Notes: generated from the letters alone by a model not told the origin. A stretch of DNA of 64,000 bases from Perkinsus chesapeaki ATCC PRA-425 (GCA_013115145.1 JAAPAO010000102.1:12670-76669); one strand, 5' to 3'; positions 4,730-54,109 are shown, numbered from the stretch's first letter. A program made the numbers and translations.

Positions 4730-7161
4730 CTACTTCGCCAGATCTTCGTGTAAATCCGTGACCACATGGTTCTTCTGCAACTGCCTCTCAGTCATCAGTT
4801 TTCTCGCTACGTTCCAAACTACATTCTTCAAGAAGGATGGTAAATTAACAAGATAAATGGCAGCCATTCGACCCATATAATGATGGGCTAGAACCTCACA
4901 GAAACTGCGTAACCATACCACCCAGTGTTGGAATATATGTATGTACTCGCCTGCATCAGTTGGCGAATAAAGAGAAAGGCTTGAGGGAATTTAACAACAT
5001 TCTTTTCGACCGTTGCAACTACCAGAATATATTACCCATAACGGAGCCACACATTACTTCTTACAATGTGCTATACTATAGCTATACATAGGTTATATAT
5101 CTTATATAGCCTATATTACTAAATGGGAAGAGAGTATATTGCCAAGGGAGTTTTACAGAAATCAATCGACAAAGATGGCGAGTATCCCAATACTGATCCC
5201 GAGAATTGTCAGACTATGATTTATTGTATCTGCCAGCTTGCTCTTTTCTACCATTTTCTTCTCACTACTACTGTATACACCGAGGATTGTTCACAGCTGC
5301 TTACTTTATAGAGGGCGTAAGCCGTTGAGAATGGCACGTCAAATCCAAGGCCACTAAAGTCTGCAATTACTACTATGGATTCTACTTTACTCGGCAGCAA
5401 CATGTACCTAACCAGTGCATGGCATTTGGGGACAGAAATTGTGTCCAAGTTACCGAGTGATGAACTCGAGGATGAAAACGCTTGTACGAATAGCTCTCTC
5501 TTTGGAGACTCGGGCTTTCACTAAAAGGCTCGGCCGCACCACTAGGCAGGGTCGCAATTGCTTATCGCGGCCACACACATACACAAATCCCTAAACACAA
5601 AAGGGCTGGGCCGAGAATCGAACTCGGGACCTCTCGCACCCAAAGCGAGAATCATACCACTAGACCACACAGCCGATACGAGAACCGTTATATAGAAAGC
5701 TACTCCTTATTATTGTCAAACTAACGTTTAACCAATCCTCACCGCATTCAACTCTCGTAACAAATCCGTATCTCCCACTGGCTGTTTGAAATACTCCAAT
5801 CCTACCAATGACACCACTTCTATCACTACTAGCTCAGTCTCTCACTCCATTCTTGAGTTTCAATCAGTTCCCTCGCCGCCCGATCAACATTAAAGCGGGC
5901 ATGATACAAGTACCTTTCACAGATGCCGATCATGACGGATAAGTCTCATACTAGCAATCGAATTAATCGGGATTCTGCTCAAAAGAGCTGCATTGAACAT
6001 CCTATATACCCGCTACAGTTGAGATGAGGTTCGTCCAACCATATCGCCCGGACGTTCTCAATACTATCATCTCAGCCATGCGTCTCACATAGTGGAGCAA
6101 GCCCCCGACCTCCGGTCGATTAACTAAGTTTATCATTGGATGCTATCACTGCAGGCTGAAAAGCTCTTACCATCACCGCCAGTGGTGGTAACAGATTTTC
6201 CAGTGGTCCATCGGTGGGGTTTGATGGGGCCAAAGCGGGCCAAAATTATTACAATAATAATATATAATATATTTTAATATACCTATAATATTACCCCGCA
6301 AAGAAATAGTTGAGATTCACAACATATACGTCACACCTTTCCGCACGTTTTTACCAGAGTTCCCGTTCGCCCAATAGTTCAGTACCCAACTCACAGCTAT
6401 CATTATGACTAATACGCATTATACTCATAACCTCACGAATCGGACGGCCTACCCAAAGTACTACCGTAAAATCCTGGGCTCCAACTGTCTGGCCAGCGTT
6501 ACTCCTCGTGCAGCCAGCACTCTGTACACTTCTTCGATGGCTTCCAGTTCATGGGGCATGAGATCTACCTGATACCCATCATGGAGGGGTGAGGATCCAA
6601 TTATGGAATCTATGGTCATCGAAAGAGAAACAAATCCATTTACGATGATAATAGTTTCATTTATATCCACTGAAGCTCAATTGCTGGACATCCAAACCAG
6701 CTGAGGGATTTCCGGAGTAACTTGTCCCCTTCAGTTGGCTGCTTACCACCATCAGTTGACAACTTTCTTGCTTTAAGTGCCAACTTGGCACTTGCAGCAA
6801 GTGAAAGCAAGTGTTTCACACTTTCCTAGAATAACTCGAATTCTGCCCTCATCAGTTATGCGTAGTACAGACTACCAGCCATGATGGATCCAAGCACTTG
6901 CAGGGTTTAGAGTTTGTATGGTTCAGCTATACAAACCCGAAACCCCACATTGCTGCCATTCGCCACGCACTACTACATTGAGGAATATTCTCCTTTCATA
7001 ATCCCCATTAGTAAACCTCGAGAACATGTCCGCATCTTCCAGCTCTCGCAGGAGCACTTCCGGTGGCAGTGTGTAGTCCCCTATGGCGGAGTCCACCGCA
7101 ATGCTCATACAGCAAACACAATCACTGTCCCCCCAACCTCATTATTAAGAACTCCAGCCAT
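4730..7161 (-). CDS. CRAL-TRIO / Sec14-like lipid-binding protein (3' end not resolved)
   Basis: Spliced: LEPRILR|YLYHARFNVDRAARELIETQEWR (CRAL-TRIO N), LRELNA|GFVYVCGRDKQLRPCLVVRP, VESIVVIADFSGLG, HYMGRMAAIYLVNLPSFLKNVVWNVARKLM. Confidence 0.85.
5603..5674 (-). tRNA. tRNA-Pro(TGG), sense, inside CRAL-TRIO intron 5591-5742
   Basis: GGCTGTGTGGTCTAGTGGTATGATTCTCGCTTTGGGTGCGAGAGGTCCCGAGTTCGATTCTCGGCCCAGCCC, 72 nt cloverleaf with one acceptor-stem mismatch, followed by TTTTGTGTTTAG (terminator plus 3' splice site). Confidence 0.95.
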
Positions 7162-7265
7162 TAACACTTATACGGGAAACAAACTCGATTGCGGTATTTT
7201 ATGGTAACCAACTATTATGAATGAATAAAGCACAGAGAATAGAAACAGCTTCGCACGGCCAGCGC

Positions 7266-11100: not shown

Positions 11101-12144
11101 GTGCCGTCCTACACTGTAGCCATACGCTCAGTATCGACCAATTTAAGCCCAGATCCCCAGCAAGGAGCTCCCTTAGCAACCTTCCATGCCGACCAAACCA
11201 GTACCATCTTTCGTTCGTTCAGGATGTTCGAAAATAGAAGGATTGAATTTGAAACGATCGATGGACGTCAAACATACTGCGATTGGGATTTCAATTATAT
11301 CTCCGACCTAAGATACATCCTCTTCACACTATCTGGTCCGTGCAGCTCATTGTTCCCGAGCTCACCGAACGAGGAAAAGGATCTTGTTCTCAACCTCGAG
11401 GAATCTAAGGCGAGCATTCAAGATCCTCCCAACCCGATTAGGCTCACTTTTCGCGGTGGAATTGACGGTGGTATCGAGCGGTTGATGAATCTCCATATAT
11501 CTGATCCTTCTCCACCGTCGCCGAGCTACTCTCTATAACTTGCTGTTGCTGTCCGGTGTATGTTGTATAGGAAAATGTAGCGTTCGTCACAAAGTGGGTT
11601 GGAGGGGGAATATAAGTTACCGATGAAAATACTGTAAACTGAATTTGGTCAGCATAGTCACCTTCATTTCATGAGAGCATTCCTAGCTGTTGTGGCACAC
11701 CTCACTGTAACCATTACAGCGATAAAGAGGGGTGTTCAGCCAGCATTCCCGCCGCAATAGAAAGCGTTCGCCGTTTTCTATGCTTTGGAGGCGAACAACA
11801 CGATGCACTCGCTTTCGATGTATGAAGGGGGAATCCTTGATGTTGTGAGCCGTGATGGATCACATAACGAATGCCAATTCGAGAAGGTCGAAGAAGAGCA
11901 AGAACTAATCACTTTCCGTATCACCGGCGAATGCTGCTCACTGTACACCTTAACACAACGTCCCAGCCAAATGCTTCTTCTTGAGTTGGAAATGGAGGCC
12001 GCCGTGATTCGTGGACCTGTAACGGGTGATCCCGAGCTCAAGTTCGCTGGGAAAATTGACGGCGGTCTCGCTCGTCTGCGAAGCCCAGTGCCAGAAGTCC
12101 CAGATCCCTTGGAGAAATGGATCCCAGTGACCCCTATAGACTAA
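11101..12144 (+). CDS. Hypothetical protein(s) with an internally repeated module
   Basis: Two ORFs ending in similar motifs: LTFRGGIDGGIERL and LKFAGKIDGGLARL; possible upstream exon(s) from about 10650. Confidence 0.4.
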
Positions 12145-12487
12145 TGTATCTGTTGGTTAAGTCAGATGTTATCATGTCGCATATTCATCTCTTTATTCAT
12201 GTGCTTGTGTGTGCGTAGACAAGCTTTGCGTTTTGACATGAGGGGGGACACGAACCTTTGCGGGCATTGAGCATAACACAACAATGCTCCTCTGTCGACA
12301 GGCAACACAGAGGAGGAGGCTCGCTGGTCTCGGCTGAGCGAGTCGCTTGGTGTATTAAATGAGAATATAGGGAATGTAGATAGCCACGGTTCTCGAGGGA
12401 CAAATCAAGTATATACTTTCCAATCTCTTGATAACGAATATGATAGCCCCCTCCTACTACTTTATACAGTACGGTTTAAAATATCGT

Positions 12488-12862
12488 ATAATAGAGTTGA
12501 AGATATCTTATAGTAGAGTTAAAGACATCTTATAGTAGAGTTAAAGATATCTTATAGTAGAGTTAAAGGTATCTTATAGTAGAGTTAAAGATATCTTATA
12601 GTAGAGTTAAAGATATCCTTTAATGGAGTTAAAGATATCTTATAGNNNNNNNNNNNNNNNNNNNNNNNNNNNNNNNNNNNNNNNNNNNNNNNNNNNNNNN
12701 NNNNNNNNNNNNNNNNNNNNNNNNNNNNNNNNNNNNNNNNNNTATCTTATAGTAGAGTTAAAGATATCTTATAGTAGAGTTAAAGATATCCTTTAATGGA
12801 GTTAAAGATATCTTATAATAGAGTTAAGGATATCCTTTAATGGAACTAAAGATATCTTATAG
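12488..12862. repeat. AT-rich 22-bp minisatellite spanning an assembly gap (N run 12646-12742)
   Basis: Units TATAGTAGAGTTAAAGATATCT interleaved with variant CCTTTAATGGAGTTAAAGATAT on both sides of the N run. Confidence 0.95.
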
Positions 12863-12878
12863 TTAATGTTGATCTAGT

Positions 12879-15800
12879 ATGGTGGCCAAATCATCAATGC
12901 CAGAATCTCAAGCAAGAGTATCTCGATCAGTCAAGCCTGCATGGAAAGCCAAGTGAGTAGTTATGATCTACCCGCACTTCAGATAGACAGCCATTTAGTT
13001 TAGCTTCATCAGCGCGGCTTGAAAATTAGTAGCGACCATCTCAATGAGAATATTCTCTATCAAACTTTTCATTATATATTGACGCCAAGAACCCTTCCCA
13101 GAGTTGCAAGCTTTAAAGAACTTGGATGGACTTCTGTCGAGTGAGACATATTGATACCTATTTTAGGAGTCGTAAGCGTCGAGGCCTCCCATCTGTTTTA
13201 TACAGCCGATGGATTGCTTTCTGCAGCACTATAGTCGACAAAGTCTGGTGAGTCCGGATGCAAATCACATTCGTGCACGACCATGCCAGGTTTTCTACCA
13301 CCACAACAATTCTAACACTTTACGCCTTGTTCGGTGATGATGTCCGAATGGCCAGTTTTGACAGCGATGCAGACCAGTCAGTTCTCTTGCTTGGCTTCCT
13401 CCTTATTCTGAATAAGGAGGAAGCCAAGCAAGGTGAATAAGTTATTCACCTGTCAGGACCTTCAACGTCATAACAGTGATCTGTCTGCTTGTCTTCGGTC
13501 TGGAGATCGTGTTCCAATCCTTCGGCAAGCCCGGCTACTTGGGCGGATTTTTCTTCTTCCTCGACGTCCTGTCATCGGCATCTCTGGTTCTAGATGTAAG
13601 CTGCGCCTAACTCACTCCTTCCCAGAGTCCTCTCGCTGTCAGCTCACGTACGTCGCTGAGGACCTGTTCGGTGACGGCTCGGGAGCCGCTGGCCAAGGTG
13701 CCCAGATCGCTCACGCTTCACACTGATACGCTTCACCTCAGGCGATGTTGCCCGAGCTGGGAGAATGTCTCGTGCTGGAACCAAAGCCGGAAGAGTCGTT
13801 CGAATCATTCGGCTGATCCGTCTCATCCGTATCGTGAAGATGTGACGACTTTTCACAACTGCGCGCTGCCCGTTAACGCCGCCACGCAAGGTACAAGGCG
13901 TTCCTCGACGCTCAGCAGCGAGAATCCAAACGGAAAGATCCGAGGCAGTCCAGACCGGGCAATGTTCTCCAGGATAACGAAAGCGATCACCTTCCTGACG
14001 ACGAGTCCGCGGTGCGCAGTTCGGTCGTGAGCATATCGTTCGGAGTTCTCCCAATTCAGTTGCCGGATGACTTCTTCGAAGAGTTTGATAAGTCCATCGA
14101 GCCCGAGGATGACGAGCCGGAATCGAGAGTTGGCAAGAAGCTGAGCGAAAGGACGACCCAGAAGCTCATCGTAACGACTGCGATGGGGAGACCCCTTCCT
14201 GAGTGTTACTCAGATTCTCATTCTCCTGATGTTGTTCATGATACCTGTGTTCACTGTGTCGGACGTCGTCCCTCAATCGGCACAGTACGGGGTGGACACC
14301 GTGTACTCCTCCTATTTGAGGTACGTCGTTACGTTTACAAGCAGAAGTTTGGTATAGTGGAAGCGTATCTGTCTGTCAAGCATATGGTCGTGGGTCGATC
14401 AGTTACGTTAACGAGTGTCTTACCACCGGTCCGCTCAGCCCAGAGACTCTAACCCATCGATCACTGTAAGCAGATGTCCACTGCTTGATTGAGACCGCTC
14501 GGCCAGATACGCTGATAAGCTCTTTCACTTCCTCTATGCGCACAACTGGGAGTCCCGTGAAGAGCCATGTGAGTTCAGATTATCGGCCAGCTATTGCAAC
14601 TGTCATTACTCGCTGCTTTCTCAGGTTCCAGCAGTGGCGCTATGTGCGTTTCCGATTACGTCAGCCATCTCGCTTGGGTTGGGTAGGCTAGGGGAGAATC
14701 TGGTTTGTCAGAGCTACTGAAACTACTTGGCTCGAGATGCATTGTTTCCGACCTTATATCACAATTCTTAACGGTTTTGAGAATTGAGGACTCCCAGTGT
14801 GAGGTCAACACGCTGTATTTTCGCCTTCGGCGCAAGAAGTTCACTCAGTTGTTGGTGATCATCTTCATCATTGACAATAGTTCATTGAGGAGTCCAAACA
14901 CAGCGCCTTGTTCGCTATTTTCGTAGAACTTCGCGAAGATCTACTCGTCAACTCAGTTACTACTCCGAGGGAACCGACCCCTGCTGGACGCATCCCCACC
15001 TGGAGAACGTCACCGCCAATGAGATACGTCTAGAGTAGTCCCTGAAAAAGCCCAAACGCGATAACTGAAATACCCAGATACGATGAAGCGTTCAACGGCG
15101 ATGATTTCCTGGTTAAGTCAGGCGACCTCAGCGACTTGACCGTAGAAAGGATTACGAAGCCGTGGGCATCCTGCGGAACTGATGCAGCTATTCCAGAAGG
15201 GGTAGGCTCGACAAGAGGGTATCTGGTCTCTCTAAACCCTATGAGTTGTAGCTGTTAAGGAGACCAGACTGTTACAGTCTATAACATTACAGTCACTAAG
15301 AGAAGAGGACGTCGAACTGATAGATTAGAGTGTTAATTGATCTCAGGCTACAGGGGTCTCGTTGATAGCTGACATCGAGTGCCCGGGCGACCTACGCTTC
15401 AACGAGAGGACTGCAGTGCTGCCCTGGCTGAGGAAAGAGACTGATCCTGACAACTATAACACCTACTTTATAGTGCGGCACTGGCCTCAGTGTTGCTGAT
15501 AGTGTGCTCGCTTAGTTCGTGATGGATGACAGATTAAAGGCCTACTGGGAGGCTGTACTCAATATGTGCCAAACGCTTTTCATCTGCCTTGTTCTCGGCA
15601 TCGGTGCACTGTTCTTCTCCAGGGACGCCAATGTAGGAGGCAACCAACTTAGTACATCTATCGCTCTCGCCGAGCAGGTGCTGGTCTTGGGTCCGATCGA
15701 GCGTATGATTGTTAAACTTGCAAAAATCAAAGACAATCCACTGGCGGCAACAACGCTTGGTGTGGACGGAGGGGTATGCTGTGGGGAATGCGAGTCACTT

Positions 15801-17769
15801 AGGCGATGAGGAGTTCAGAAGGGAGGAGACAGCAAGAGCAAGAGACGCAGCTCGCCAGGCTCGAACGGGCCTGTCGAGATTGTGGGACATCGTTACGGTA
15901 GGGCCTCCTGATCGTGGGAGTGTTTTTATTGTTTTTCTATCAGTTCCAAGGCGCCCGCTCCAGTGACGGAGGTCATGAGTAAGTCGTACTACTTTCATAC
16001 TGTTCAACTTGATCCTCTCATTCGTAGACCGCTCGAGACCGTCATGCTCGAAAAGACTATCATCAAGATCGGTAGCCTGTTGGCTCTGGGATTCGGGGAG
16101 GCGGGGGCCGAAATCATCGGCAAGAATATGCAGGTGAGCAACGTCTGGTAAAAAGCGCCTTGCAGGGCGGAAAACGCCGTCTTAGGGAGCTGAGAGGTCG
16201 GCCGGAGTGAATGCCATGATTCCTGGACGAAAGGTCAACGCTGTTTTTGGCTTTTGCGACATTCGCAACTTCACTGATGCCACTGAAGTTCTCAAGGACA
16301 AAGTGATGCTGTTCGTGAACCAGGTGAGCCTATTTGACATAGCCGCAATCACGCCACCTTGTTGGTTCAGATTGGAGAGATCGTGCACGGCATAGTCGAC
16401 GAGTTCCATGGCGCCCCCAACAAAAATATCGGCGATGCATTCCTTGTGAGCGCTGAAGCGACACTCTTCATACTTACTAACTGACAGATCGTTTGGCGAT
16501 TACCGGAGGACAACTCGGACCGGCGAAGAAAAATGTGTGACATGGCGATCATGTCATTCGTCAAGGTAAAGCTGCAAACCAGCGAAAACCTTCAAGCTCA
16601 GCTCTCCAGGTTGTCGCTGCCATTAATCGAAGTCCAGTACTGTATGAGTATCGGCAGCATCCGGGATTGCAAATGCGATTGGCAAACTACAGGTGGGCCA
16701 ACTCGGTGACTATCTCTCATGCTTGGAAATCGTTTCAGGGTTCGAATGGGCTTCGGTATGCATTGTGGATGGGCTATCGAAGGTGCCATAGGCTCGGAGT
16801 TTAAGATCGATGCAAGCTATTTGTCACCTAACGTCAATGTTGCTGGTCAATTAGAAGCTGCCACGAAGGCATATGGGGTAAAGATTATCCGGGCCGTTGG
16901 AAATGGGATCTCTCGTGTGGGTGTGTAGCTCAGTGGTAGAGCGGCTGACTGCAGATCAGCAGGTCCTCGGTTCAAATCCGGGCGCGCCCTTTGTTTTAGG
17001 TTTGCATGCTCCTATCCGGCGCTCTGATTGACTCTTGCAACAAGGAATTGCGACGGTACCACTCATGAACCTTTTAGCATTCCGAACCCTTTCTCATTCT
17101 ATCAGGCATTGTCGTATCATAGACAGAGTCATGATACACGGCGCTCCAATGGGCCTCTTCACCATCGATTTGGTCTACGAGCATCTCTCACTCGCGGAAA
17201 GCGCATGTAAGTCTTCATTAATGAACTTGTCCTCCCACTGGCATCTCTGCAGCGAAGCCTCTCCGAGTGCATATTAAAGGAGACCATCATACCAGCGCCA
17301 GCGCCCAACGGTGAGTACATCTCTGTTTTTCTGTGATGTCATCCTATATCGTTGCTGTCAGATTCAGAACCCGACAAGAACGGGAGGCAAGGAAGGCGAA
17401 TAAATGGGCACCGAATTACTGCATTGCTGATTTGTTTGATCACCATGAAGACGTAATCGAGATGCGGAAGATCTTTACAGCCGAGTTTTTTAAGAAGTTC
17501 GATATGGGTTTTCGGTGAGCTCTATCGCGGCGACTATCTCTGCAGCACATTCTAGGAACTACGAAGCTGGCGAGTGGGAAGTGGCGTACAATATGTTTTG
17601 CGTGACTGAAAAGTTGCTCGCTTCAGAAGGATACACTGATGGGCCGAGTGCGGCTTTGAAGAGGTGGATCATAATGTATCGCGGTAACCTTGACTGTGAC
17701 TTTAGGTATATGGACAAGTATAATAGGGAAGCCCCACCGACATGGAACGGTGCCCGAGAGTTACCGTAG
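12879..17769 (+). CDS. Class III adenylyl cyclase, alveolate AC-alpha type (ion-channel-like TM domain plus cyclase)
   Basis: TILTLYALFGDDVRMASFD, an S4-like Arg-rich segment RVVRIIRLIR, PIERMIVKL, PGRKVNAVFGFCDIRNFTDATEVL, GAPNKNIGDAFL, GFGMHCGWAIEGAIGSEFKIDASYLSPNVN; K and D specificity residues indicate ATP. Confidence 0.92.
16919..16990 (+). tRNA. tRNA-Cys(GCA), sense, inside cyclase intron 16878-16999
   Basis: GGGTGTGTAGCTCAGTGGTAGAGCGGCTGACTGCAGATCAGCAGGTCCTCGGTTCAAATCCGGGCGCGCCCT, complete 72-nt cloverleaf (G-U pairs included), followed by TTGTTTTAG; splicing restores ATKAYG|VCMLLSG. Confidence 0.97.
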
Positions 17770-17916: not shown

Positions 17917-19617
17917 TCAAGCACCTTCACTGAAATCAAAATGCGCCGCCCCGCTCCTGCTAGCCACCGGAGTGTGAGGAACAACTCCAGAGGATACGCA
18001 ACCGACAACTCGCTCGTGGAAGCCCCAAGGCTCCTCGTAGGAGGTCTGAAAGACAAACAATCGAATTCGCGGCAATGCGGGTTTTACCTGTATGGTGACC
18101 AAGTCGGCACGGTCCTCAGTGGCTCCCAAATTGCTGTAACGTACATAGAGGATGAAACCTATGGTGACGCCCACGACGCCGAATAGAGAATAAGGGGAAA
18201 AGGTTTCAGCATGGTCCTTGCCCATGAGAAAGGAACTGGTGTACAAGAGGCTCGATACCGGCAATTTAACAGCATAGGCTAGGGAGCACATAATAGCTCC
18301 AACCTGCAGTGCTGAGCCATAGCGGGTCACGGCAACACCAAGAACATTGAAAACCAGATTAACCACACAGTAGGCCAAAAGGAGGGCACCGGCCGGACCT
18401 ACTGAGAAGGTGAATGCATCCAGAAAGTTGAATACGACCGCGTGCGGCGCGAGCGGCACGCCGCCTGGTTGACCAGAGAGATAGGGAATGCATTGAAGGA
18501 AGCCGAGGCCGAATGATATAATAGTTTGGTAGCCAGCCACGTAGGCAGTCAGAGTCCAAACGCCCACACTGTAGTTACTGAAACCGGATTCCTTGTAGAC
18601 GTTGGAGAGGGCCATTGGTATGTTGGACAGGAAATACCTGAGGAACGAAGTTGTCGAGGAATCTCGAATGAGAGAAACTCGTTTTGGAAGAGTCGGAGGA
18701 TTTGAAAAGTGGACTAGAAATGTGGATGCCGTGATAACCTAAAATTAGGAAATCGCAGTTAGGAAGTAACTTATCTAAAACTAACTACTAATTTCGAGTA
18801 ACTCGTCACTCGTTGCTCTCGCAATTCCACCGAATACTTACAAACAGACCGACAACCCGCTGCAGTTGGCCACAGTTACCCCACTGAACGAAGGGATCAC
18901 GGTTATGCAAGCGCTGATGAAGACGATCGAGGCCGCGCCCTGAAACCAGCACTTTTGTTCAACTCCATCTTATCAAATCCTACTATCGATTTCATGCTGT
19001 AAGTGGTACCGAGTACCAACGCGCTGCACACCATCGTGACGGGGATCAGAGTCTGGTTGAGAACCGTCTGGAACTGACCAGGGGTTGACACCCCTCCAAT
19101 GCTGCTGAGGAGTGTCCCCAGCCCGTCTAATAGGCCCATAATAGCGAACTTGTATCTATGCGGGCTGGTAAGCAAATCCGAGGCTATTTTCCTACTGTGG
19201 TGGGACGCTTTCCTCGGGTCGCTTGGAGGCCTTCTTCTCGCTTTTCAGGACCATGGCGGGGATAGCGGTCATGACCATATACCCGACATTGCAGAATTGG
19301 TCCACGAAAAATGCGTAACTACGAGGAGACGCTGCCGCCGTCGGCCCTGGACTGGCCACTCACTCCTGGCCGTAGATGTTTTGAACTATTTTACAGGACA
19401 CATCGTTGATGCTTCCCGCAATACAAAGAAGTAGTGCAAGCACTATAAGCACGTTGCGTGGTTGGCAGAGATACTCTGTGCACGTTTGGCGGCGCGGTGT
19501 TGCCTCCTGAATAAAAAGAGTAACCGAAAGGTCCCCGGTTCGATCCGCGCTTCTTACAGTTTGCGCCAAGAGCGGTATCTCGAGTGGCGGCTGGACGCTG
19601 CCTTTAGTAGTTGCCAT
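17917..19617 (-). CDS. CRT-like (chloroquine resistance transporter family / DMT superfamily) transporter
   Basis: GLLDGLGTLLSSIGGVSTPGQFQTVLNQTLIPVTMVCSALVLG, PMALSNVYKE, YCVVNLVFNVLGVAVTRYGSA; about 10 hydrophobic segments. Confidence 0.8.
19520..19558 (+). pseudogene. tRNA 3'-half relic (Val/Asn-like), antisense, in CRT-like intron 19507-19557
   Basis: GTAACCGAAAGGTCCCCGGTTCGATCCGCGCTTCTTACA: variable loop, T-arm/B-box and acceptor strand; its 3' end read on the minus strand is the GTAAG donor. Confidence 0.7.
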
Positions 19618-33806: not shown

Positions 33807-34054
33807 GACAAGTGGCCGAAATCAATAACTGGTTTATCGTGATAGATAACATTATGTTACCACTCTTCCGCCAAATCGTCAATGAATAAGACGAGTGAGG
33901 GCCTAAAGAGGATGTCTTTGTTTAACCTTAGATCGCAACATTTGTCTATACGACTATTCCACCGATGATGATACATACGCTACATCCGAACCAATTTAAT
34001 TGGAAACTGGATGAAAGGAACAAGATAGCTGAGGTGGCTTATTCTGAAACCATT
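33735..34054. repeat. 320-bp direct repeat, copy 2
   Basis: Matches 30120-30439. Confidence 0.97.
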
Positions 34055-35895: not shown

Positions 35896-36627
35896 CGGAA
35901 CTAACGCTCACTAAAACCGCAGCTTTGAACGTCTCACTAGACCGTCATCACTAGCCAGTTCCGGTCAGTTTTAATTAGTCAGCCAGCTTTTCTCATGATA
36001 ATGCCGCTAATTGTACCACGGGTTCCTCTCTATAGCTCGCCACAGCGTGTAGGCTACCATGCGCCAGCCGTATTGGCCTCCATCGTATCGGTGACCTCAC
36101 TACTACATGAACTCAAAGCGACGCTTTTTAATAGTCAACAATGATACATTATTCCACCAAAAGCATGGTACACTGCTAACTGCGATAAGCACGTTGAAGA
36201 ACGTAACCTCAGATGTCTTTGATGCTTTCACTCAATCTGACATAATCGGCGATGGATCACGTAATCACTACCACAATTCTACCACAACATCGCTAGCGGT
36301 ATCGCTAAGCCCCAATGAGCCAGGAATGAGCTTGGGTCTTCCCCTGCTATGTGGTCGAGATTGCGGCGGCCTCAAGGGTAGACTGCCTGGCTGCTGTTTT
36401 CCTCTGGTGCGGACTGGCGGGGTTGCCTAAATGGTAGTTTCTGATAGATGCAAGCCCAATAGAGGTGCTACCCGCTGAGGATTTGCAAGGAATGGTGGAA
36501 CCAACGACAACGCTCCTGGCAGTTGAGGAAGAGGGGTAGCGGGTACGGTGGTGTCCTACGAGGAATCAGAATCACTCTTGAATTTCATGTCTTAAAGGCT
36601 CCCCAAGTGAGTAAAAGAATAGAAAAA

Positions 36628-36701
36628 TACCCGATGCAGGATTCGAACCTACGACCATCTGCTCCGTAGGCAGACATTCTATCCAGCTGAACTAATCGGG
36701 C
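36628..36701 (-). tRNA. tRNA-Arg(ACG), antisense within a probable + strand intron (36607-36737)
   Basis: GCCCGATTAGTTCAGCTGGATAGAATGTCTGCCTACGGAGCAGATGGTCGTAGGTTCGAATCCTGCATCGGGTA then TTTTT; 74 nt. Flanked on + by GTGAGT and CTCTTTTCAG. Confidence 0.95.
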
Positions 36702-36737
36702 GATGATTTCTTTCCTCAAATCGAATACTCTTTCAGA

Positions 36738-37264
36738 TATTACCTCTGCGTCGGGGGGAGGATACATCGGTCTGGTCGCTGAAGACTCCTGAATGCACAA
36801 AATTGAACGGCGCCGAACACTCGTTCAAGTCGGCGGCAAACAACGCGAAACTATTTTATAGACTTCTCCTTACCACATCTGTTGCTTCGATTTCTCCACC
36901 AAACGAGACCGTGGGTGGTGAACTAGGGACTGCTCCAGATACCTATAACACAGCGTACTCATCTCCGCACATGACACGTGACAAGCCCAATTACCTCCGA
37001 GAACCGATGTCTTCCCAAAGACGCTCTTCCACTACTGGAGAACAACTAACTACTCCATATGATACAATGTCCTACCTCATCGACCCTCGCTTTAACGAGC
37101 TCCGCTGGGAAGTTCGCTGCCGCACGTCCTACAACAGCAAGACTATGCCCTCCGAAATCATGTCGCTTTACTTCCTGTATTCTCGCCAACTCTCGCATGC
37201 GCTCCGACACAGCCACGAGGCCCTCCTCCAACTGCAAGAATCTCGCACCCACACTCTAAGATAG
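36738..37264 (+). CDS. Hypothetical protein (exon after the tRNA-Arg(ACG) intron; 5' exons unresolved)
   Basis: Open frame from the AG at 36737 continuing into ORF 36803-37264. Confidence 0.35.
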
Positions 37265-40500: not shown

Positions 40501-40890
40501 TAAGATGAGAGTGATGCTAAACATTTCAAATGTTTCATACAAAATTGTTTCCCGTTTATTCCCTTCAAAGAAGTAAAGAACGCCAGCAAGCCATGCCGAT
40601 TTGCTTACGATAATCGCAGTGACGGAAGATACGATAATGAAGCTCATCATAGATGAATAGGCCAAAGCCATCCGACTGCTATCTAAAAAATAAAAATACC
40701 GCGACAGGGATTGAACCAACGCCCTCTATAATGGAAGTGAGGCGCTTTCCCTGCTGATCTAGTAGACCTCCTCCTACTTGGCTCCTCCATAAATAACCAG
40801 AGCCTTTCCCGCCATGATCGCGTTACGCCAACTCCTCCAAATTTATCAAGAAGTATCCTCCTCGAACTACGCCGTCGCATATCCACCTGA
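37543..40890 (-). CDS. Voltage-gated K+ channel (Kv-like) with two C-terminal EF-hands; start not resolved
   Basis: RERLWLFMEEPN|SSRMALAYSSMMSFIIVSSV (S1), IFTAE...NCID|ILTILPFYI (S2/S3), pore ISTVGYGDVSPETVAGQLI, S6 MAMPLSIVGSNF; EF loops DQDSSGEIDIDEF and DEDMSGSISFAEF. Confidence 0.9.
37646..37675 (+). pseudogene. tRNA 3'-end relic (Leu-like), antisense, in Kv intron 37625-37681
   Basis: CCGACGCAGGTTCGATTCCCCCTCATGGCA then TTTTAC (minus strand GTAAAA donor). Confidence 0.65.
37829..37862 (-). pseudogene. tRNA 3'-half relic, sense, in Kv intron 37817-37893
   Basis: GGTGGGCACCCGAGTTCGAACCCTGGCGGCGACA then TTTTCTCGTCAG (terminator-like tract plus acceptor). Confidence 0.65.
38756..38779 (+). 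pseudogene. tRNA 3'-end relic (Ala-like), antisense, in Kv intron 38721-38791
   Basis: CGGGTTCGATCCCGGGTAGCTCCA then TTTTGAACTTAC (minus strand GTAAG donor). Confidence 0.65.
39784..39811 (+). pseudogene. tRNA 3'-end relic, antisense, in 46-nt Kv intron 39765-39810
   Basis: GACGCGAGTTCGAATCCCAGCTAGTACA; removing the intron restores the S3 helix NCID|ILTILPFYI. Confidence 0.65.
40697..40768 (-). pseudogene. Full-length (72 nt) degenerate tRNA, anticodon position TCC, sense, in Kv intron 40683-40777
   Basis: GGTCTACTAGATCAGCAGGGAAAGCGCCTCACTTCCATTATAGAGGGCGTTGGTTCAATCCCTGTCGCGGTA then TTTTTATTTTTTAG; A-box, anticodon loop and B-box at tRNA spacing, but the stems no longer pair. Confidence 0.7.
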
Positions 40891-42869: not shown

Positions 42870-44999
42870 GGGGATAAAGTCGTTATCGTTAAGCTGTGCA
42901 AAAGCAACATAAGAACGTCGAGACAGTGCAATGTAAGTTGTATGATTGCGCTGCCCATACCTTTTCCAGAAGGCTTAAATTATTACCATAAATCCGTCTG
43001 ATCGTATTGTTTTATACCCTCTCTGTTCCCGTAGGTACAAGACATATTTCCCAGCTTCCGAGGGTGACATCACCTGTATTATAGTTGGTTATCATCCTTA
43101 TATAAGCAACTCGGAGTATCTAATGAAGAACCATGCAAGGTGGGTCCTATCTCAACCTAACCTCGAAAATATCTTTGCAGATGCCTTCGACATTTCGAAA
43201 AGGCCGCTGTGATATTATTCGATCAGCCTAGTTGTGGTCGAAGTGACGGTCTTTGGGGGTAGTAGTGACCGAGAGGGCAATTTTGAGGTAATTCTTGTGC
43301 AGGTTCATGCCCTCCTGGGAGGACCATGTTGCTTTGACTGAGAAGTTCGTACGCAAGGTAACTCCGGGCGTTCGGGGAATAAGGAATATTGCAAACCAGA
43401 TGCGATGTTGCCCCTTGGAGTGCTTGGCCTTGATTCTCTCCGCAGTGCCATATATTGTGCGAGCGTAATAGGTCATTTCAAAACCCACATCGCTCCGCTA
43501 AATAATACGGAGATTCCGAAAAAGTGGAAGTTTTGTATCTTTAGAAGTCAGCTTCGCAGGATTTGTGTGTTTAGAGTCATCCTTTGTTGTTCGGTACGGC
43601 TCGTCTCGTCCTGCTCCGCCGTGTCGAAGCGGCTTCTGCTGTCCGTTACCGCTTCACACTTTTGTTTTGTGTCAGGTCGTTGTCCCCCTTCGAGACCGTA
43701 TAACCTCCGAGCAGCATAAGTTCATACCGATTTATGGTTTCGGTGAGGATATCGGCGCTAATGTCCTCGCCACATCTGCATTGCGATCGTAAGCCGTTGC
43801 GCATGCGTGCATTCCATACCGCTCTCTCCTCTAGGCCTGATATTTATAACGGTATCATTCTGGCCTCTCCCTTCATCCGCGATGGCGATGCGGTTAAAGC
43901 TGGTGGATTCGCTAGTAAGTTGTAGACAGTCATTTTCATACCGCTCCTTCCTATTCGAACCTTAAATTATTGCACAGTATCCTGCAGCTCAACTCTGACA
44001 GAATGCGGTTTTTCTATCAGATTTTCTGGCCAAATGTGAAGGCTCCATCTTTCCCAAGTACCCCGGCGCGCCTTTGAAGGAGGCTTTAGATAAGCGTTTT
44101 GTAGACAAGGACTTCTCCGACTACACCAGTAAGTTGCTCCTTACTAGCTCACACTCCTACCGACCGAGTTCATGAGAGGCCAAGATCTCTCCAGAAACCT
44201 AAGCCCTGAAATCAGGCTCGAGAGCTTGATTACGCATAATGTTTTTCGGGAGTATTTAGTAGCGATCGTATTTCGTACAGAGAAACTGGAGGGGCTAAGA
44301 AGTTCCATCACAGCTTGGGATTTGGTCTGTTATTGTTGTTGCTAAGATGGATTATGAGGATCCTATAGGTACCGAGAACAAATTAATGTGGAGAATGCCG
44401 CTTAGAATGAAAACAAATAAGTCGATCAAACAGGGACAGAAATGGCTCGAGAAACATTCTGCCGAGCTGACAACTCCGATCTTGGTAGGGGTCTTTTTCT
44501 AGACTGGCGAGTGGGATGGGTTGATTTGGCAGATTCTTCAATCGTCCAATGATAAGATAACTTCGCCTGACGGATCTAAGCTGCTGTATGATTTGTGTGG
44601 AAGTAAAGACAAGTGTATAAAGATGTATGATGACTGCCCCGAGGCGGGACTAAAGTAGGGCAGCCGAGGATCGAACCGGGGTCGTTAGCATGACAGGCTT
44701 GTGTTAGGTATGCTCACGAACTGCTCAGTGCAGAGCCTGCTGAAATGTCCAAGCCGGTCTATAATGACATCACGACGTGGGTGAGTGCTCGTAAAATCCG
44801 TGCAGAACCTCTTCATTCGTCAACTCCACGAGGACAACATACCGCAGCTTCAACTCCTCAAATTGCACCCTCGGGGGCCGCTTCGGCCGGTGCCACCCAA
44901 GCTGCTCCTTCGGCCGGTGCCACCCAAGCTGCTCCTTCGGCCGGTGCCACCCAAGCCGCTCCTTCGGCCGGTGCCACTCAAGCCGCTCCTCATAATTGA
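42870..44999 (+). CDS. Monoacylglycerol lipase-like alpha/beta hydrolase, paralog 1 (nucleophile Ser replaced by Asp); start approximate
   Basis: IIVGYHPYISNSEYLMKNHAR, IPIYGFGEDIGANVLATSALR, RPDIYNGIILASP, KDKCIKMYD...K|YAHELLSAEP...VYNDITTW. Confidence 0.8.
44658..44700 (-). pseudogene. tRNA-Asp(GTC)-like relic (anticodon arm to 3' end), antisense, filling intron 44655-44707
   Basis: AAGCCTGTCATGCTAACGACCCCGGTTCGATCCTCGGCTGCCC: loop CTGTCAT, variable region, T-arm. Confidence 0.7.
44881..44988 (+). repeat. 27-bp tandem repeat x4 (encodes SAGATQAAP units if coding)
   Basis: CTTCGGCCGGTGCCACCCAAGCTGCTC repeated four times with 1-2 substitutions. Confidence 0.95.
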
Positions 45000-49486: not shown

Positions 49487-52400
49487 CTAGCCTACTTTGC
49501 TGTTGATCCCTAGAAGCTCACACCAGACTTCGACATCTCTCTCGTCAGCTAGTGTCACCGTGACATCATCCAACGAGCCAGTCTCCCGGTCTTCCCGACT
49601 CTTAATACGCTCGATCCAAGCCTCGCTCTGATGGCAAATGAATCTAGCTTCATAGTCGGCATGAAGATCTGCCCTATCTATATAAGCCATACAAAATGTC
49701 TGGAGTTCTTCGACACCGAATGAAAGCAAGTGGGAAATAGACCTATTTCTCACAGCAGTATTTCTCACCAAAAGACTGCCGACTCCCCAACTGCCAGGTC
49801 CTTGACGTAGGTTAGTATCAGCAAAACAGTCATTCACCAGATAGCTGCTCATCTCCAAGTTAAGTTCCGACACACAGACACCCAAACAGTAATTCCCTAA
49901 GAAAACTGTCCCACCGCGGCCAGGCACCTAATGATGCCCACCGTTGATTTCATCTTGCTGGTCAACGACCTCCTCCAGAGACTCCTCGCCGTACTTCGAG
50001 CGGATCTATCACAAATTTCGAGTAATATTTTATTCACATCATCTTCACCTTTTCAAGCAGCAGCTTAGCCGTGTCGTACTTCTGATTGGCTATGGCGCAG
50101 TAAACCGGCGTACGTCCATCGAAGTCAGTGAGGCGAGGATCCGCTTCGTTTTCTGAAAGGGCCAACATTGGCCTATGCAGCTTGCACAGCGCCATAGCCT
50201 CTGCAGTCTTGGGGGGCGTATTGTGCAAGCCGATAGTCGTCAACGAGTGCAAGGCTTTCCAATCAACATCGAGAGCTATTGAAAGTATCGAACTGAGCTC
50301 CTGCGCTATAATGAGCCTTGTGTTTTCCTAGTAGAAGTTCTGCGGGGCCTTTACCAAGGAGGGCCACGAGATTCTCGATATTATTATTAATAATAAAATA
50401 TTGATTGTTCAATCCGACCTTTCCAAGGCGCAAAGGTGGCCAAACCTACCGCAGCCCAGCAGATAGGAAAACGTACATCAAGAGGAAAGATGCGGTTCCG
50501 GTTGAGCTCTGATCCTCACCTATCAAGAATTCTATCACAGCGGTTGAATTCCTTCCAGCAGCGGCGTAGTGCAGTGCCGTGGCCCCAGTCTTCGGGTTGA
50601 CAAAGGTAGCATCGCAATCAAACAGGTTCACCAGCTTCTTCAGAACCGGTAAAGCGTTTTTATCGTGCGGTTTTTGGCATACCTTCTGGGAGCTATTAAG
50701 ATCTCCATAGGTAAACTTACCTGAAGCACCACTGTATCGCCTGTGTCGGGGTTGGGCTCGTCCGGAGCGGCGCCGCTGTCCACCAGCAGGCCGAGGAGCT
50801 TGTGATCGCAGTTCTTCTCCAGAGCAACGCGGAAAGGACTTAGCTGATGATTGGAGTACACATTGACCTGCGCACCATACAGATTCCGAAAGATACTCTT
50901 CTGCGCACGCGTGCGGTTACACTAGCTCCAGCCTTCAAAAGCAGCTTCACCAGCACGTCCCTCGACTTTGGTTTCTTCAGAGCAGCGAAGAGCGGCGTCT
51001 CTCCATTGCCGATTTTCTTGTCCGGATCGGCTCTATACTGTAGCAGTATCTCGCACATCTTAGGCACCCCTCGATTAGCCGCCGCATAGAGCGGACTGAA
51101 CCCTGTGGAAGGTGCCGTATTAGGATCAGCCTTGCCTGATTGACAACGGTCAAATATTCTCTTTTACATCACATAGCTTCGTTTCTACTACGAACTATTG
51201 GCTTATACTTGTAATAGTACAAATTGTAAAGTGTCAGTAATAGAATAATTGGCACTACTATACGTTATTAAACATACACCTAGCAATCAAAGTGAACGTG
51301 CAACACAGGTAGGTAGTACATCACGCAGAAATTGGGAAGCAAAATAGAGCCGTAACTGTTCAGCCGTTCGCTGTCAAGTGTGATGGAGAGACCAGTGCAC
51401 TCGAGTTCAACAGTATGTGCACACAGCAATGGCATCAGGAAAGGCCGAGAAATGCCGAAACCTTTCCGCCCTCTAACAAATGAGCGACCATGAAGCACTA
51501 AAAGACCGGGACCAAGGAGCTGCCTACCATCCAGCAGTAAAGTGACCATTTCCTCATGCACCTTGTCCACTGCTGCGTAGAGGGCTGTTGTTCCGGTCTT
51601 AGGGTGCACCCAGTTGAGATCGATACCGCCCTCAATAGCTGCTCGACAAGCCTCAATATCGTTGTTTCTGACACAACGAATGCAAAAATTTCAACTCATG
51701 AAACGCTTCGCTCCGCCTACCTGGCGGCAGTATGCAAATCCATAGCCTGTAGAAGAGCAATCATATCTTTATCGTCCGTCAGGTCGATCGGGGTGCGACC
51801 AATACTGTCCGTCACACCAAGCTGAGCGCCGCGAGTTATCAAAGATTTGACCTGCCGGAAGCAATCTCCGAGGTCCCGGGTTCGATCCCCCGTCTTGCCA
51901 TTTCACGATCGTTGTTAATAACCGCCAGCATAAGAGGAGTTAGACCGCCGACTGGACTGACGTCATTCGGGTCGGCAGAATGATCCAATAGTATCGAAAT
52001 CATCTCAACACTGCAGGAGCTTCCCACTGCCTGAGGAAACAGATGTGACAAATATAAAAGTGGATATAAGGATTATTAAAAAACATAGAAAACAAAGGGG
52101 ACTAGGAAAGAGCAGACTATAGCGAAGGCTGAAGGAAGCTGTGAGAAAGAAAGACGAAAATAGTATGACACTATTAGGATACTAAATAGCAAATGCCCAG
52201 TGAGAATCCATGGATCCAAGAGGGTGCTCTCTGAATTGTTAAAATATATGCCGGTGGTCCCTAACACAACATGCCTAATGTCGACGAAATTCCGCAAAAT
52301 TTTGATCGAATTTTACACTGAATTGATATTTCATTTGAGAAGCTGATGATGCGATTTTGGAGCTCAGTCTCGCAAGACCAATAGATATGCCCTCGGTGCT

Positions 52401-54109
52401 CACCAGTAAAAGCAATGTCTCGTTGGTCTCTGGATCGACATAGCTGGCGTCAACTCCTCCACTCCTCAGGAGCTCCTGCATACTGTAACACGCGTCTCGC
52501 GCCTTCGGTATCTCGTTCGCCGAGCCACTGCTCTCGCTGGCGAAACTCGAGACCAGGTTGCCTCCTGCACCCTGAAATATAGCTCGATACCGGACCGGGG
52601 AGCAATCCAGGCTCTCAGAAATATGTTGCTCAAAGATCGACAAGTGTTCCTAATGCGGAAGAGACGCGAGGAAAGGTCTGCTAAAAAATGAAGCATCGAG
52701 GGCTGCCGTTCTGGGGCCAACGGCTGATGTTCCCTTATAACTCCCCATCCCGACCAGACTCCTGGCCGGTCCAATCAGCATTTCAGAAAACAATTCCCTA
52801 TGGTGGAGGGCCCTGTTTTCACAGTGGTGGTGGGCCCCACCACAGGAAGGCCAAGGAAACAGCGACGGCGTTAATTTGGAAGCTCCGACCCGCCCGTCGG
52901 ACACTTACTCCAACCCATTTCTCAGCAAACTGCGAAAGCACCCCCGAAGAGCTCCGCTTGGGCCCCGACTCGGACCTGATACACAAGATATTTGAGCGTG
53001 TTTCCGTAACGAGCCGCCTCGACAGCTGGAGCGGAACCCTCACAAAAATGTGCCAGAAAATGGTGAGGCAGCTGTGTTGGAGTATAGGCACACCTCCAAA
53101 AAATAGCGAACTTTCGTCGGTATTTTTGGCAAAAATACCGACCAAAGTTCGCTATTTTTTTCTAATTTTGAGCCTCCCACGCAAAGCAGCGTGCACGTGG
53201 CGAGAGTATTTTAGGACTGATGCAAAAAGATGTGACACGAAGATTACAACTACGGGACACACGAAAGTTACTCATCTGAATCGAACGATGATGGATAGTT
53301 TTCTCCATTTCCACCGGTTTTTCCCGGCTCGTCCACCTCCTCATAAAGGTTGCCGTGCCTAAAAAACACCACTGCTGGGATTCGAACCTCAGACCTCAGC
53401 CAAAGCACTTGCACAATGCGACAGCAAAAATGTTCCGGAGTTCTTGGAGCTTCGCAAGAGACTCTTCAGTGTCGCAATCCTCCGCATCTGTCACGAATCA
53501 CATAATCCGTCAAATCAGCGCACCGCCGCCAGCTTACGCTCCAACACGAAGCCCTCCAAAACCGATCCCTCGCGAGATGATACCCTCTTGAATATCTTAG
53601 GTGTCCCATGGAGGAAGCTGCCTCGAGGGGTCTGCTGCCGCTGTATCACAGGCATATGCGAATCACTCAGACTCATGAAACCTATAAAATCTTGCAATCT
53701 TGCAAGTCCTCAACGCTCACACACCTGTTCCGGCCGGCAATAGAAGTGATTTCCTCCGAACAGCGTGTGTCGGTACAGTGGCAGTCGAGTAGGAGATTGG
53801 TGTGTCGCCGTTTAAATCGGTTAATAACGGGCTCGCTCCATCGGCGAGCAGAATCGATACAATCTCGACATTGAGTTGCCTCACTGCAATGTGCAGGGGG
53901 GTGCCTGTAGAGCGTCAATTCAAAATTGTCGTCTTGGGTGGCAGCAGCTTACAGTGGTCCAGCGGGCTGAGCACGTTGACAGATGCATCGGCGTTGAGCA
54001 AGAACTGGACAACCTCTTCGATGTTTCTGCGGACTGCCAGCAAAAGTAATGTGTCTTTCGAATGGAGGTGATCCACAGCATCAACCGAGACCTCATCGCT
54101 CTGTACCAT
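49487..54109 (-). CDS. Multi-ankyrin-repeat protein (may be more than one gene)
   Basis: Repeated ANK motifs: DTLLLLAVRRNIEEVVQFLL, GLTPLMLAVINND, GTTALYAAVDK, GETPLFAALK, GATALHYAAAGRN, GRTPVYCAIANQKYDTAKLLL. Confidence 0.88.
51870..51900 (+). pseudogene. tRNA 3'-half relic, antisense, in ankyrin intron 51852-51906
   Basis: GAGGTCCCGGGTTCGATCCCCCGTCTTGCCA then TTTCAC (minus strand GTGAAA donor). Confidence 0.7.
53367..53402 (-). pseudogene. tRNA 3'-half relic, sense, ending at the 3' splice site 53359 of an ankyrin intron
   Basis: TGGCTGAGGTCTGAGGTTCGAATCCCAGCAGTGGTG then TTTTTTAG. Confidence 0.6.

Follow-up and report, generated by a model that had tools for sequence, protein, structure and literature searches.

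tRNA genes and tRNA remains in very short introns of Perkinsus, with B boxes possibly retained as TFIIIC sites

tRNA genes and B-box motifs in the window

The window, i.e., the whole 64-kb stretch of DNA from the oyster parasite Perkinsus chesapeaki (contig JAAPAO010000102.1) that was analyzed, contains a guanylate-cyclase/RasGEF gene, a CRT-like gene, a K+ channel/EF-hand gene and an ankyrin-repeat gene, together with five intact tRNA genes detected by ARAGORN and the Rfam model RF00005. tRNA-Pro(TGG) (5603-5674, minus strand), tRNA-Cys(GCA) (16919-16990, plus strand) and tRNA-Arg(ACG) (36628-36701, minus strand) scored 53-68 bits, with 68 bits for tRNA-Cys(GCA). The other two, which were absent from the initial annotation, are an intact tRNA-Arg(CCG) (30120-30191, minus strand) and its likewise intact duplicate (33735-33806, minus strand). 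Both are intergenic, and in P. marinus and P. olseni the orthologous gene is likewise followed by tRNA-Arg(CCG) at the equivalent site. This pair serves as a contrast, showing that some tRNA genes in the window are not intronic.

The strict B-box consensus GGTTCRANNCC matched 11 times in the 64-kb window, as compared to 0.79 expected matches, i.e., about 14-fold more, and at least 11 matches were obtained in none of 100 shuffles. With the looser pattern GTTCRANNC, which had been used in the initial annotation, 38 matches were found versus 17.2 expected. In addition, about ten truncated tRNA 3' halves were located at the edges of short GT-AG intervals in the window. Together with the five intact genes, these data bear out the core observation made earlier, namely that tRNA genes and tRNA relics occur in introns. 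An excess of B boxes over shuffled controls was also seen in introns: in a set of 61 from three species, each backed by homology or annotation, nine carried a B box with at most one mismatch (mean of 1.86 and maximum of 5 in shuffles), while about 85% lacked the motif. The match density was 1.0 per kb in predicted introns versus 0.45 per kb in predicted exons.

At the corresponding loci of P. marinus and P. olseni, tRNA relics were found in introns in the same pattern as in P. chesapeaki, and tandem tRNA arrays were seen in P. olseni. Perkinsus genomes are rich in tRNA genes; P. marinus has been described as carrying five tRNA types in more than 500 copies (PMC3706591).

Introns with tRNA genes or relics

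The intron at 16878-16999 (plus strand) of the guanylate-cyclase/RasGEF gene, which is delimited by orthologous exon blocks, contains the intact tRNA-Cys(GCA) in sense orientation, with a 5' flank of 41 nt, a 3' gap of 9 nt and the trailer TTTGTTTTAG. Its P. olseni ortholog (L004 13996-14245) contains a pseudo-tRNA-Cys with 72% identity (z = 10.6). Between these two species, z was below 3 in 15 of 19 intron pairs of this gene; the remaining four were the tRNA-Cys pair, two pairs with probable missed micro-exons and one marginal pair (z = 3.6). A degenerate Asp-like pseudo-tRNA that had not been described before was found in the intron 14321-14402 (plus strand; covariance model E = 4.8), where the acceptor AG cuts its T loop. 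The P. olseni ortholog of this intron (L004 17325-17650) contains degenerate tRNA-like sequence as well. It is thus shown that tRNA genes occupy introns and that a gene still intact in one species can be a pseudogene in the orthologous intron of a second species. Since tRNA-Cys is intact in one species and a pseudogene in the other, and the Asp-like copy has decayed in both, tRNA genes reside and die in introns. One of the alternatives put forward in the initial annotation, the birth and death of tRNA genes within small introns, is supported by these two orthologous pairs.

The intact tRNA-Pro(TGG) lies in sense orientation in a probable intron (5591-5742, minus strand), with a 5' flank of 68 nt and a 3' gap of 12 nt that comprises an oligo-T tract and AG. 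The acceptor is supported because the CRAL_TRIO domain begins at the first residue of the exon 5453-5590, and the donor is putative. For tRNA-Arg(ACG), both the host intron and the host strand are uncertain. The plus strand previously proposed for the host intron (36607-36737) is probably wrong: open reading frames on the plus strand around the tRNA scored negative for codons, the annotated gene is on the minus strand, and the gene finder placed the tRNA inside a minus-strand intron (36441-36876).

Intron 1 of the CRT-like gene (19507-19557, minus strand; 51 nt), which is validated by the annotated protein and, in P. olseni, by both the ortholog and an in-frame stop, consists almost wholly of an antisense tRNA 3' half with a B box at 19537-19547 (plus strand). 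In P. olseni, this intron likewise has 51 nt and the identical truncation. The interspecies similarity of intron 1 reached z = 13.5 in local and 6.4 in global alignment, as compared to about 0 for introns 2-4; i.e., the relic is truncated in both species, the other introns of which are no longer alignable. In intron 4 of the same gene (18940-18983, minus strand), a new case from the intron set, an antisense B box with one mismatch is located about 7 nt from the donor, and no B box was found in the P. olseni ortholog of this intron.

For the intron described as 27994-28100 (plus strand), the donor was validated in three species, but the acceptor was not, the true end being 28449. The resulting intron of 456 nt (27994-28449) carries an antisense relic with its B box at 28012-28022, 18 nt from the donor. 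The other two species have a B-box-like motif at the equivalent position (L002 9885 for P. marinus, L003 11493 for P. olseni), with diverged flanks.

Two introns of the K+ channel/EF-hand gene, both on the minus strand, contain antisense relics and are supported by breaks in Pfam domains; both were also predicted independently by a splice-aware gene finder. The intron 38721-38791, with a B box at 38758-38768 (plus strand), is preceded by the exon 38794-38922, which matches positions 26-63 of 79 of Ion_trans_2 and ends at the donor. The intron 39765-39810, of 46 nt and with a B-box-like motif at 39790-39800 (plus strand), is preceded by the exon 39811-40056, which matches Ion_trans positions 25-72 and also ends at the donor; the frames on either side are open and have coding-like scores. 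Farther along the minus strand, at 37625-37893 (covariance model E = 1.3), two relics with B boxes at 37654-37664 (plus strand) and 37840-37850 (minus strand) lie in the GT-AG intervals 37625-37681 and 37817-37893, which are candidate introns. Neither was predicted as an intron by the gene finder, and three-frame reading indicated that the channel gene probably stops before or at these intervals. A further candidate intron, 40683-40777 (minus strand), contains a decayed full-length tRNA (40696-40768; covariance model E = 0.07) followed by a T-run and AG; its flanks are open, with weak codon scores.

The introns 44655-44707 (plus strand) and 53359/53360-53414 (minus strand; 53359-53414 in the prediction) are known from the gene finder only. 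In the former, the 3' end of an antisense relic with a B-box-like motif at 44667-44677 (minus strand) coincides with the donor, and the upstream exon matches Hydrolase_4 positions 195-229. The latter contains a sense relic with a B box at 53378-53388 (minus strand), followed by T6 and AG, and the tRNA covariance model matched 53371-53428 (E = 0.013). In the ankyrin-repeat gene, an intron with an antisense relic and a B box at 51879-51889 (plus strand) is supported at about 51852-51906 (minus strand), and ankyrin repeats in the upstream exon reach the donor; the exact borders are uncertain, as the reading frames do not fit them, and the gene finder proposed 51852-51922 instead. Altogether, nine of the 13 introns listed initially are supported, and 37625-37681, 37817-37893, 40683-40777 and 36607-36737 remain candidates. 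An assembly gap at 12646-12742, within a 25-nt minisatellite that resumes on either side, overlaps none of the listed introns.

Decay of the tRNA and persistence of the B box

The relics are only about 30-45 nt long and show the B-box consensus in the absence of a functional tRNA, an A box, a tail or a common body. Of 30 relics, 13 had the variable-loop motif AGGTC, and A73 together with a T-run was seen in many. With the Rfam tRNA model, no relic was found at E ≤ 10, and our own tRNA covariance model yielded E-values of 0.013, 0.07 and 0.11 for three of them, all others being matched less well. As noted initially, CCA does not follow position 73; T-rich trailers are found instead. These trailers and the missing CCA indicate that the relics derive from genes rather than from mature tRNA.

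The three outer T-stem pairs were standard in 46% of cases in 30 relics, or in 57% when the best of three registers was taken, as compared to 59% in random sequence. Neutral decay, given that a relic is still detectable, predicts about 80%. Moreover, all five orthologs that were located by position and not by motif kept the B box with at most one mismatch, and orthologous relics, when anchored, were 74% identical within the B box, as compared to 55% on its upstream and 50% on its downstream side. The persistence of the B box next to a randomized T stem fits selective retention, and its outlasting the rest of the tRNA across species suggests, from sequence comparison, that the motif is still used. 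The far slower decay of the B box, relative to adjacent positions, makes continued selection on it probable. The suggestion of the initial annotation that intronic B boxes are selectively kept thus gained support from the comparison with the T stem and from the orthologs found by position, although this support is indirect.

We give an even chance to the reading that relics and living tRNAs represent Pol III tRNA genes and their remains in very short introns, in either orientation, with the B box being kept, most simply as a TFIIIC site. Perkinsus introns have a median length of about 42-49 nt. As introns were compacted to this size, a tRNA-bearing intron would have retained only a splice site, a 5' flank of 20-70 nt, the tRNA itself and, pressed against the other splice site, the oligo-T tract. 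In sense orientation, the T-run would double as the pyrimidine tract, and in antisense orientation, its complement would provide donors of the GTAAAA or GTGAAA type. After the death of the tRNA, internal deletions would return the intron towards normal size, whereby the interior 5' half would be lost and the 3' half at the edge would stay against the splice site. The B box would then persist as a putative TFIIIC-binding site without a tRNA, by analogy with the extra-TFIIIC (ETC) sites of yeast. Against this reading, a TFIIIC site inside a gene might hinder the transcription of this gene.

The two fixed layouts that had been described, with the tRNA 3' end abutting the acceptor in sense and the donor in antisense orientation, were overstated and result for the most part from the compaction of introns and from the search. 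Because a search based on the B box finds only 3' halves, the layouts partly reflect the way in which the relics were found; remnants of the A box and of other portions of the tRNA were observed as well. The sense layout is broken in P. olseni, where 155-220 nt separate the orthologs of sense relics from the acceptor, and in P. chesapeaki the acceptor of 14321-14402 truncates the relic within its T loop.

It is unlikely that the relics form a neutral graveyard, in which the tRNA origin within introns would be unchanged, nothing would be selected, and the B box would only seem to persist, owing to recognition bias and a few lucky orthologs. This explanation is at odds with the retention of the B box in all orthologs found by position, with T-stem pairing at the random level beside B boxes with at most one mismatch, and with the similarity of the truncated CRT relic where the compared introns show none. 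In its favour, two P. olseni haplotypes differ at 5 of 51 positions of the CRT intron-1 relic, which equals the divergence of other introns and affects the B box; no constraint is apparent at such a short time scale. Some relics of P. olseni have no P. chesapeaki counterpart and vice versa, and, apart from the motif itself, the relics of the 27994 intron can hardly be aligned among the three species (z = 2.1, 2.6 and -0.6), which also agrees with neutrality.

Origin of the relic introns and relation to known systems

The initial annotation had further considered that tRNA genes create introns. tRNA or tRNA-derived units would insert into exons, and their 3' end and terminator would supply the splice signals, similar to introners, so that each insertion makes an intron spliceable in either orientation. 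No support was obtained for this alternative, which we regard as decidedly unlikely. Every relic intron that allowed a comparison was also present in the other species, and neither target-site duplications nor terminal inverted repeats at the borders of relic introns were in excess over control introns (boundary direct repeats with a mean of 4.0 nt versus 3.7 nt; terminal inverted repeats with a mean of 4.1 nt versus 3.6 nt). The sole lineage-specific intron seen had no tRNA-like match, and the pair of intact and pseudo-tRNA-Cys reflects decay in place. What speaks for insertion is that, in short cases, the relic and the splice signals make up nearly the entire intron, and that relics cluster in adjacent introns and genes, with 5-7 relics within 4 kb here and five within 1.4 kb in P. 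marinus. Such dense clusters sit awkwardly with each relic being a former tRNA gene.

A 29-nt block with sharp edges, found in unrelated, non-orthologous introns in both orientations, also speaks for insertion. In about 155 kb from three species, this was the only small group of similar relics, with the 29-nt core at three independent sites; otherwise, relics share nothing outside the tRNA-like core or B-box region. The P. marinus copies of the block have already-degenerate bases in common, which hints that a dead unit was copied. The GAGTAA end of the sense copies forms the donor, and antisense copies carry a branch-point-like TTACTC near AG. As a tentative extension, somewhat doubtful in our view, the B boxes of dead tRNAs may constitute a selected, genome-wide set of putative TFIIIC-type sites in mini-introns, possibly thousands, a part of which may spread by the copying of degenerate tRNA halves into new introns, i.e., as a tRNA-derived introner.

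Very unlikely is an element acting at the RNA level, for which the TTCGAA/TCGA core would be kept as a splicing signal of very short introns. The core, as read directly from the sequence, is palindromic, so that the pre-mRNA carries it whatever the orientation, and the motif is indeed kept in both orientations and, in introns of about 50 nt, is located near the centre. However, most supported introns lack the motif, it lies far from one splice site in introns of 456, 250 and 326 nt, and the conserved stretch runs asymmetrically into tRNA-specific bases such as AGGTC. Although tRNA-derived SINEs carry B boxes as internal promoters, a single SINE family or chance matches are barely credible: chance was rejected by the shuffles, and one family, as already doubted in the initial annotation, by the varied tRNA-like contexts, the short length and the lack of a common non-tRNA body, an A box and a tail.

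Placing tRNA genes and their decaying remains in very short introns, as preferred here, invites comparison with known systems. Of the 609 tRNA genes of C. elegans, 44% reside in introns, and the association of a tRNA with its host gene has been conserved across species (PMC4999229). Perkinsus resembles C. elegans in having intact Pol III genes in Pol II introns, in either orientation, and in the persistence of the pairing between tRNA-Cys and the guanylate-cyclase gene. Unlike in C. elegans, Perkinsus introns of about 120-150 nt are filled by the tRNA, its flank and the terminator against the splice site, and dead copies form the body of 40-70-nt introns. The ETC sites of budding yeast are few and mostly intergenic. 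In these and related B-box-only TFIIIC sites, as in the relics, the B-box consensus is accompanied by neither an A box nor a functional tRNA, and the motif is conserved as its neighbours diverge; the Perkinsus sites differ in being intronic, frequent (9/61) and by all appearances descended from tRNA genes, with TFIIIC occupancy being putative. The introners of Micromonas, Aureococcus and Amoebophrya, which are often strain-specific, belong to families whose members resemble each other and have direct repeats at their boundaries and inverted repeats at their ends (PMC7789003). Like introners, the relics are short units that, in short cases, fill nearly the whole intron, and some copies recur in unrelated introns; unlike introners, they lack a repeat excess and any body outside the tRNA-like core, and their introns are common to species. 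With SINEs and tRNA pseudogenes they share tRNA ancestry, a retained B box and a lost cloverleaf, but unlike SINEs they have no A box, no LINE-derived or A-rich tail and no target-site duplication, measure 30-45 nt and show varied isotype contexts. Dada DNA transposons of P. marinus, with 4.7-11 kb, insert into tRNA genes (PMC3706591). They come from the same genus and show that the tRNA load of Perkinsus is unusually large, but nothing Dada-sized or Dada-like flanks the relics. No report of tRNA-filled mini-introns or such relics was found for Perkinsus in the literature searched.

If the pattern holds genome-wide, about one-tenth of Perkinsus introns would consist of tRNA genes or what is left of them, so that a compact protist genome would offer a concrete and datable source of intron sequence. 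Such introns would also provide a series from intact gene via pseudogene to B-box-only relic for the origin of TFIIIC sites without tRNA. Perkinsus gene models and tRNA pseudogene calls should allow for overlap of introns and tRNAs. The findings are also relevant to the sharing of some 50-150 nt of DNA by Pol III units and the spliceosome. In P. olseni, a donor-like GTGAG was found 5-26 nt from the 3' end of tRNA-Val(CAC).

B boxes and tRNA remnants in three Perkinsus species

The longest ORF of the window was 100% identical to a Perkinsus chesapeaki protein, and the window belongs to contig JAAPAO010000102.1. The B box GGTTCRANNCC occurred 11 times in it compared with 0.79 expected, and no shuffle reached 11; the looser motif of the initial annotation occurred 38 times compared with 17.2 expected. 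Five intact tRNA genes (Pro, Cys, Arg-ACG and two Arg-CCG) were identified concordantly by ARAGORN and Rfam. The other strong B boxes were found in the context of a tRNA 3' half, often with an AGGTC variable loop, T loop, discriminator A and T-rich trailer. These relics, i.e., truncated or decayed tRNAs, were placed at the edges of short GT-AG intervals, and CCA was never seen after them. The Rfam tRNA model matched no relic at E ≤ 10, and our own covariance model detected the relics weakly. Perkinsus is unusually rich in tRNA genes (PMC3706591), and tRNA genes nested in introns are well known in other organisms (PMC4999229). Full-text literature searches yielded no description of intronic tRNA relics in Perkinsus.

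For comparison, ortholog loci from P. olseni and P. marinus were taken in as L002–L008. The gene at 27811-29991 has orthologs in both species (57–61% protein identity), and the CRT-like gene showed 78% protein identity in the comparison with these species. The guanylate-cyclase/RasGEF gene (+), aligned from 11761 to 17766, is orthologous to 20409-13242 of the P. olseni locus L004 with about 28 exon blocks; this alignment, in which similarity was weak upstream of 13162, yielded 19 intron pairs that served as controls. The junction at intron 1 lies outside the regions covered by the distant CRT-like homologs L009 and L010. For the K+ channel/EF-hand gene (channel gene), an exon-level homolog search found none; thus, its five relic introns lack orthologs for comparison.

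The relics are arranged in the same way, and densely, in the loci from P. marinus and P. olseni; the arrangement is, therefore, a genus-level property not peculiar to the window. B boxes were, as had been anticipated, commoner in introns than in shuffled controls: 9 of 61 supported introns from the three species contained a B box with at most one mismatch, compared with 1.86 in shuffles. The pattern is real and was reproduced in different species.

Support for individual introns

Among the 13 introns initially proposed, 16878-16999 (+), which contains tRNA-Cys, was validated by the orthologous exon blocks of L004. The annotated CRT-like protein places its intron 1 at 19507-19557 (-); the P. 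olseni ortholog matches, and read-through there meets a stop codon. In the channel gene (-), the Pfam ion-channel domains stop mid-profile at the proposed donors of 38721-38791 and 39765-39810, and both introns were also predicted by the gene finder, as were 44655-44707 (+) and 53359-53414 (-). The first version of this gene finder used codon usage only and was too weak; the second version, with splice-site weight matrices trained solely on other introns, was usable and gave fragmentary models. A greedy ORF-chaining walk was unreliable, and the ORF-continuity test by itself was not discriminating because of the short exons. The acceptor of the tRNA-Pro intron 5591-5742 (-) was supported, since the CRAL_TRIO domain begins with the first exon residue. 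The intron proposed at 27994-28100 kept its donor, which is common to three species, and lost its acceptor, the true intron being 27994-28449 (+). The putative introns 37625-37681 and 37817-37893 (both -) lie at or past a probable stop codon, the exact borders of 51852-51906 (-) are uncertain, and 40683-40777 (-) is a putative intron. A plus-strand host for tRNA-Arg-ACG was not borne out: the plus-strand ORFs score as non-coding, and the annotated gene is on the minus strand.

The long ORFs 38993-39523 (-), 36707-37261 (+) and 52685-53359 (+) had negative codon scores and are probably non-coding; the first of them (177 aa) had no homologs among 1.8 billion representative proteins. Intron 13381-13456 (+) carries a perfect palindrome (about 21+21 nt), with spurious weak tRNA-model matches at 13385-13433. 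Upstream of the annotated start of FOL47_000238 (27811), two exons at 26984-27398 match P. olseni residues 26-143, by which the 5' end of this P. chesapeaki model looks truncated. At 12540-12860, in the 5' portion of the guanylate-cyclase/RasGEF region, there is a minisatellite with repeats of about 25 nt. The assembly gap 12646-12742 lies inside it with the repeat present on both sides; copy number alone is missing, and no listed intron is affected.

Residence and decay of tRNA genes in introns

In P. olseni, the intron orthologous to the tRNA-Cys intron contains a pseudo-tRNA-Cys, whose D arm and anticodon loop are broken and whose B box is retained; the pseudo-tRNA shares 72% identity with the P. 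chesapeaki tRNA (z = 10.6). In comparison, 15 of the 19 guanylate-cyclase/RasGEF intron pairs had z < 3 and one marginal pair had z = 3.6; two other high-scoring pairs look like missed micro-exons. Intron 14321-14402 (+), absent from the initial list, harbors a decayed Asp-like tRNA with its T loop cut by the acceptor, and its P. olseni ortholog also contains a decayed tRNA-like sequence. CRT-like intron 1 has 51 nt and the same truncation in both species with a strongly conserved core (z = 13.5), whereas the remaining CRT-like introns compared were not alignable between species. Such orthologous introns with intact and pseudo copies or common relics indicate that tRNA genes were intron-resident before the species split and die in place, in agreement with the earlier proposal of tRNA birth and death within existing small introns. 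The relics are best interpreted as a graveyard of tRNA genes that resided in introns, with a surviving B box. They represent a variant of known things and not a new system.

The intact cases are compact: the supported ones have a 5' flank of 41 nt and a 3' gap of 9 nt (Cys) or 68 and 12 nt (Pro), and in P. olseni Val-CAC a donor-like GTGAG lies 5–26 nt from the tRNA 3' end. This fits introns that would have been reduced to the smallest size accommodating a Pol III unit. After gene death, internal deletions would take the interior 5' half and spare the peripheral 3' half. A-box remnants gave 9 matches compared with 1.75 expected, 4 of the 9 inside intact tRNAs; the B-box-based search detects 3' halves only. 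The two layouts had been described as fixed, which did not hold, since P. olseni sense relics lie 155–220 nt from the acceptor and one relic is cut within the T loop. Of the two layouts, antisense-at-donor is the more robust; it holds even in introns of 84, 177 and 456 nt, which form one orthologous set.

Beyond decay in place, the data leave room for copying of dead tRNA units. Unrelated introns contain copies of a sharp-edged 29-nt block in both orientations, the P. marinus copies of this block have degenerate bases in common, and the relics are strongly clustered. Creation of introns by tRNA insertion, as had also been considered, was not supported: boundary direct repeats and terminal inverted repeats were no longer than in control introns, no relic intron among those compared was missing from the sister species, and beyond the tRNA-like core the relics had no body in common. 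Amoebophrya introners differ in structure from the Perkinsus relic introns. Three further readings were rejected: retroposed mature tRNA on account of the absent CCA and the T-run trailers, split tRNA halves on account of acceptor strands not conserved between orthologs, and gene conversion from tRNA genes on account of derived bases that the relics share and that differ from the Val-CAC genes, the sole tRNA-Val genes sampled.

An intron gained or lost between species is the 308-nt P. olseni intron at L004 15748-16055, to which uninterrupted coding sequence corresponds at about 15672 in P. chesapeaki; it had no tRNA-like match.

B-box persistence and neighboring features

In 30 relics with no more than one B-box mismatch, the three T-stem pairs adjoining the motif were standard in 46%, or in 57% with three registers allowed, compared with 59% in random sequence and about 80% predicted by neutral decay conditional on relic detectability. 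The B box was kept in 5 of 5 orthologs located by position and not by motif, and anchored identity of orthologous relics was higher in the B box (74%) than upstream (55%) or downstream (50%) of it. Together, the random-level T stem, the positional orthologs and the B-box identity point to retention of the B box by selection. A comparison of two P. olseni haplotypes counts against it, since the relic intron differs as much as other introns and the B box itself has changed. To our knowledge, TFIIIC binding is the sole established DNA-level function of the B box, and the retained copies are putative TFIIIC sites. Alternatively, the motif may have a role at the RNA level, its TTCGAA core being palindromic.

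Synteny around the gene at 27811-29991 with P. marinus and P. olseni was limited to the gene itself, tRNA-Arg-CCG and a snoRNA-like block. This block of about 125 nt adjoins tRNA-Arg-CCG, is nearly invariant in the three species and contains a candidate C/D-box snoRNA at 30344-30422 (+) and 33959-34037 (+), with a terminal stem CCACC/GGTGG, C box GATGATGA and D box CTGA. The candidate had no Rfam match, and no spliced-leader RNA was found in the block. A 300-nt unit comprising tRNA-Arg-CCG and the block is duplicated at 30120-30419 and 33735-34034 (3615 nt apart, 98% identity). The bromodomain-gene introns at 19832-20207 have 34, 35 and 49 nt in P. chesapeaki, and their P. olseni orthologs (L008 846-1936) have 450, 162 and 221 nt. 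Between the CRT-like and guanylate-cyclase genes of P. olseni, adjoining the intron with the dead tRNA-Cys, lies a tandem array (L004 11147-12852) of at least 10 tRNA genes, in which Arg-CCT and Cys-GCA alternate, with extra covariance-model matches.
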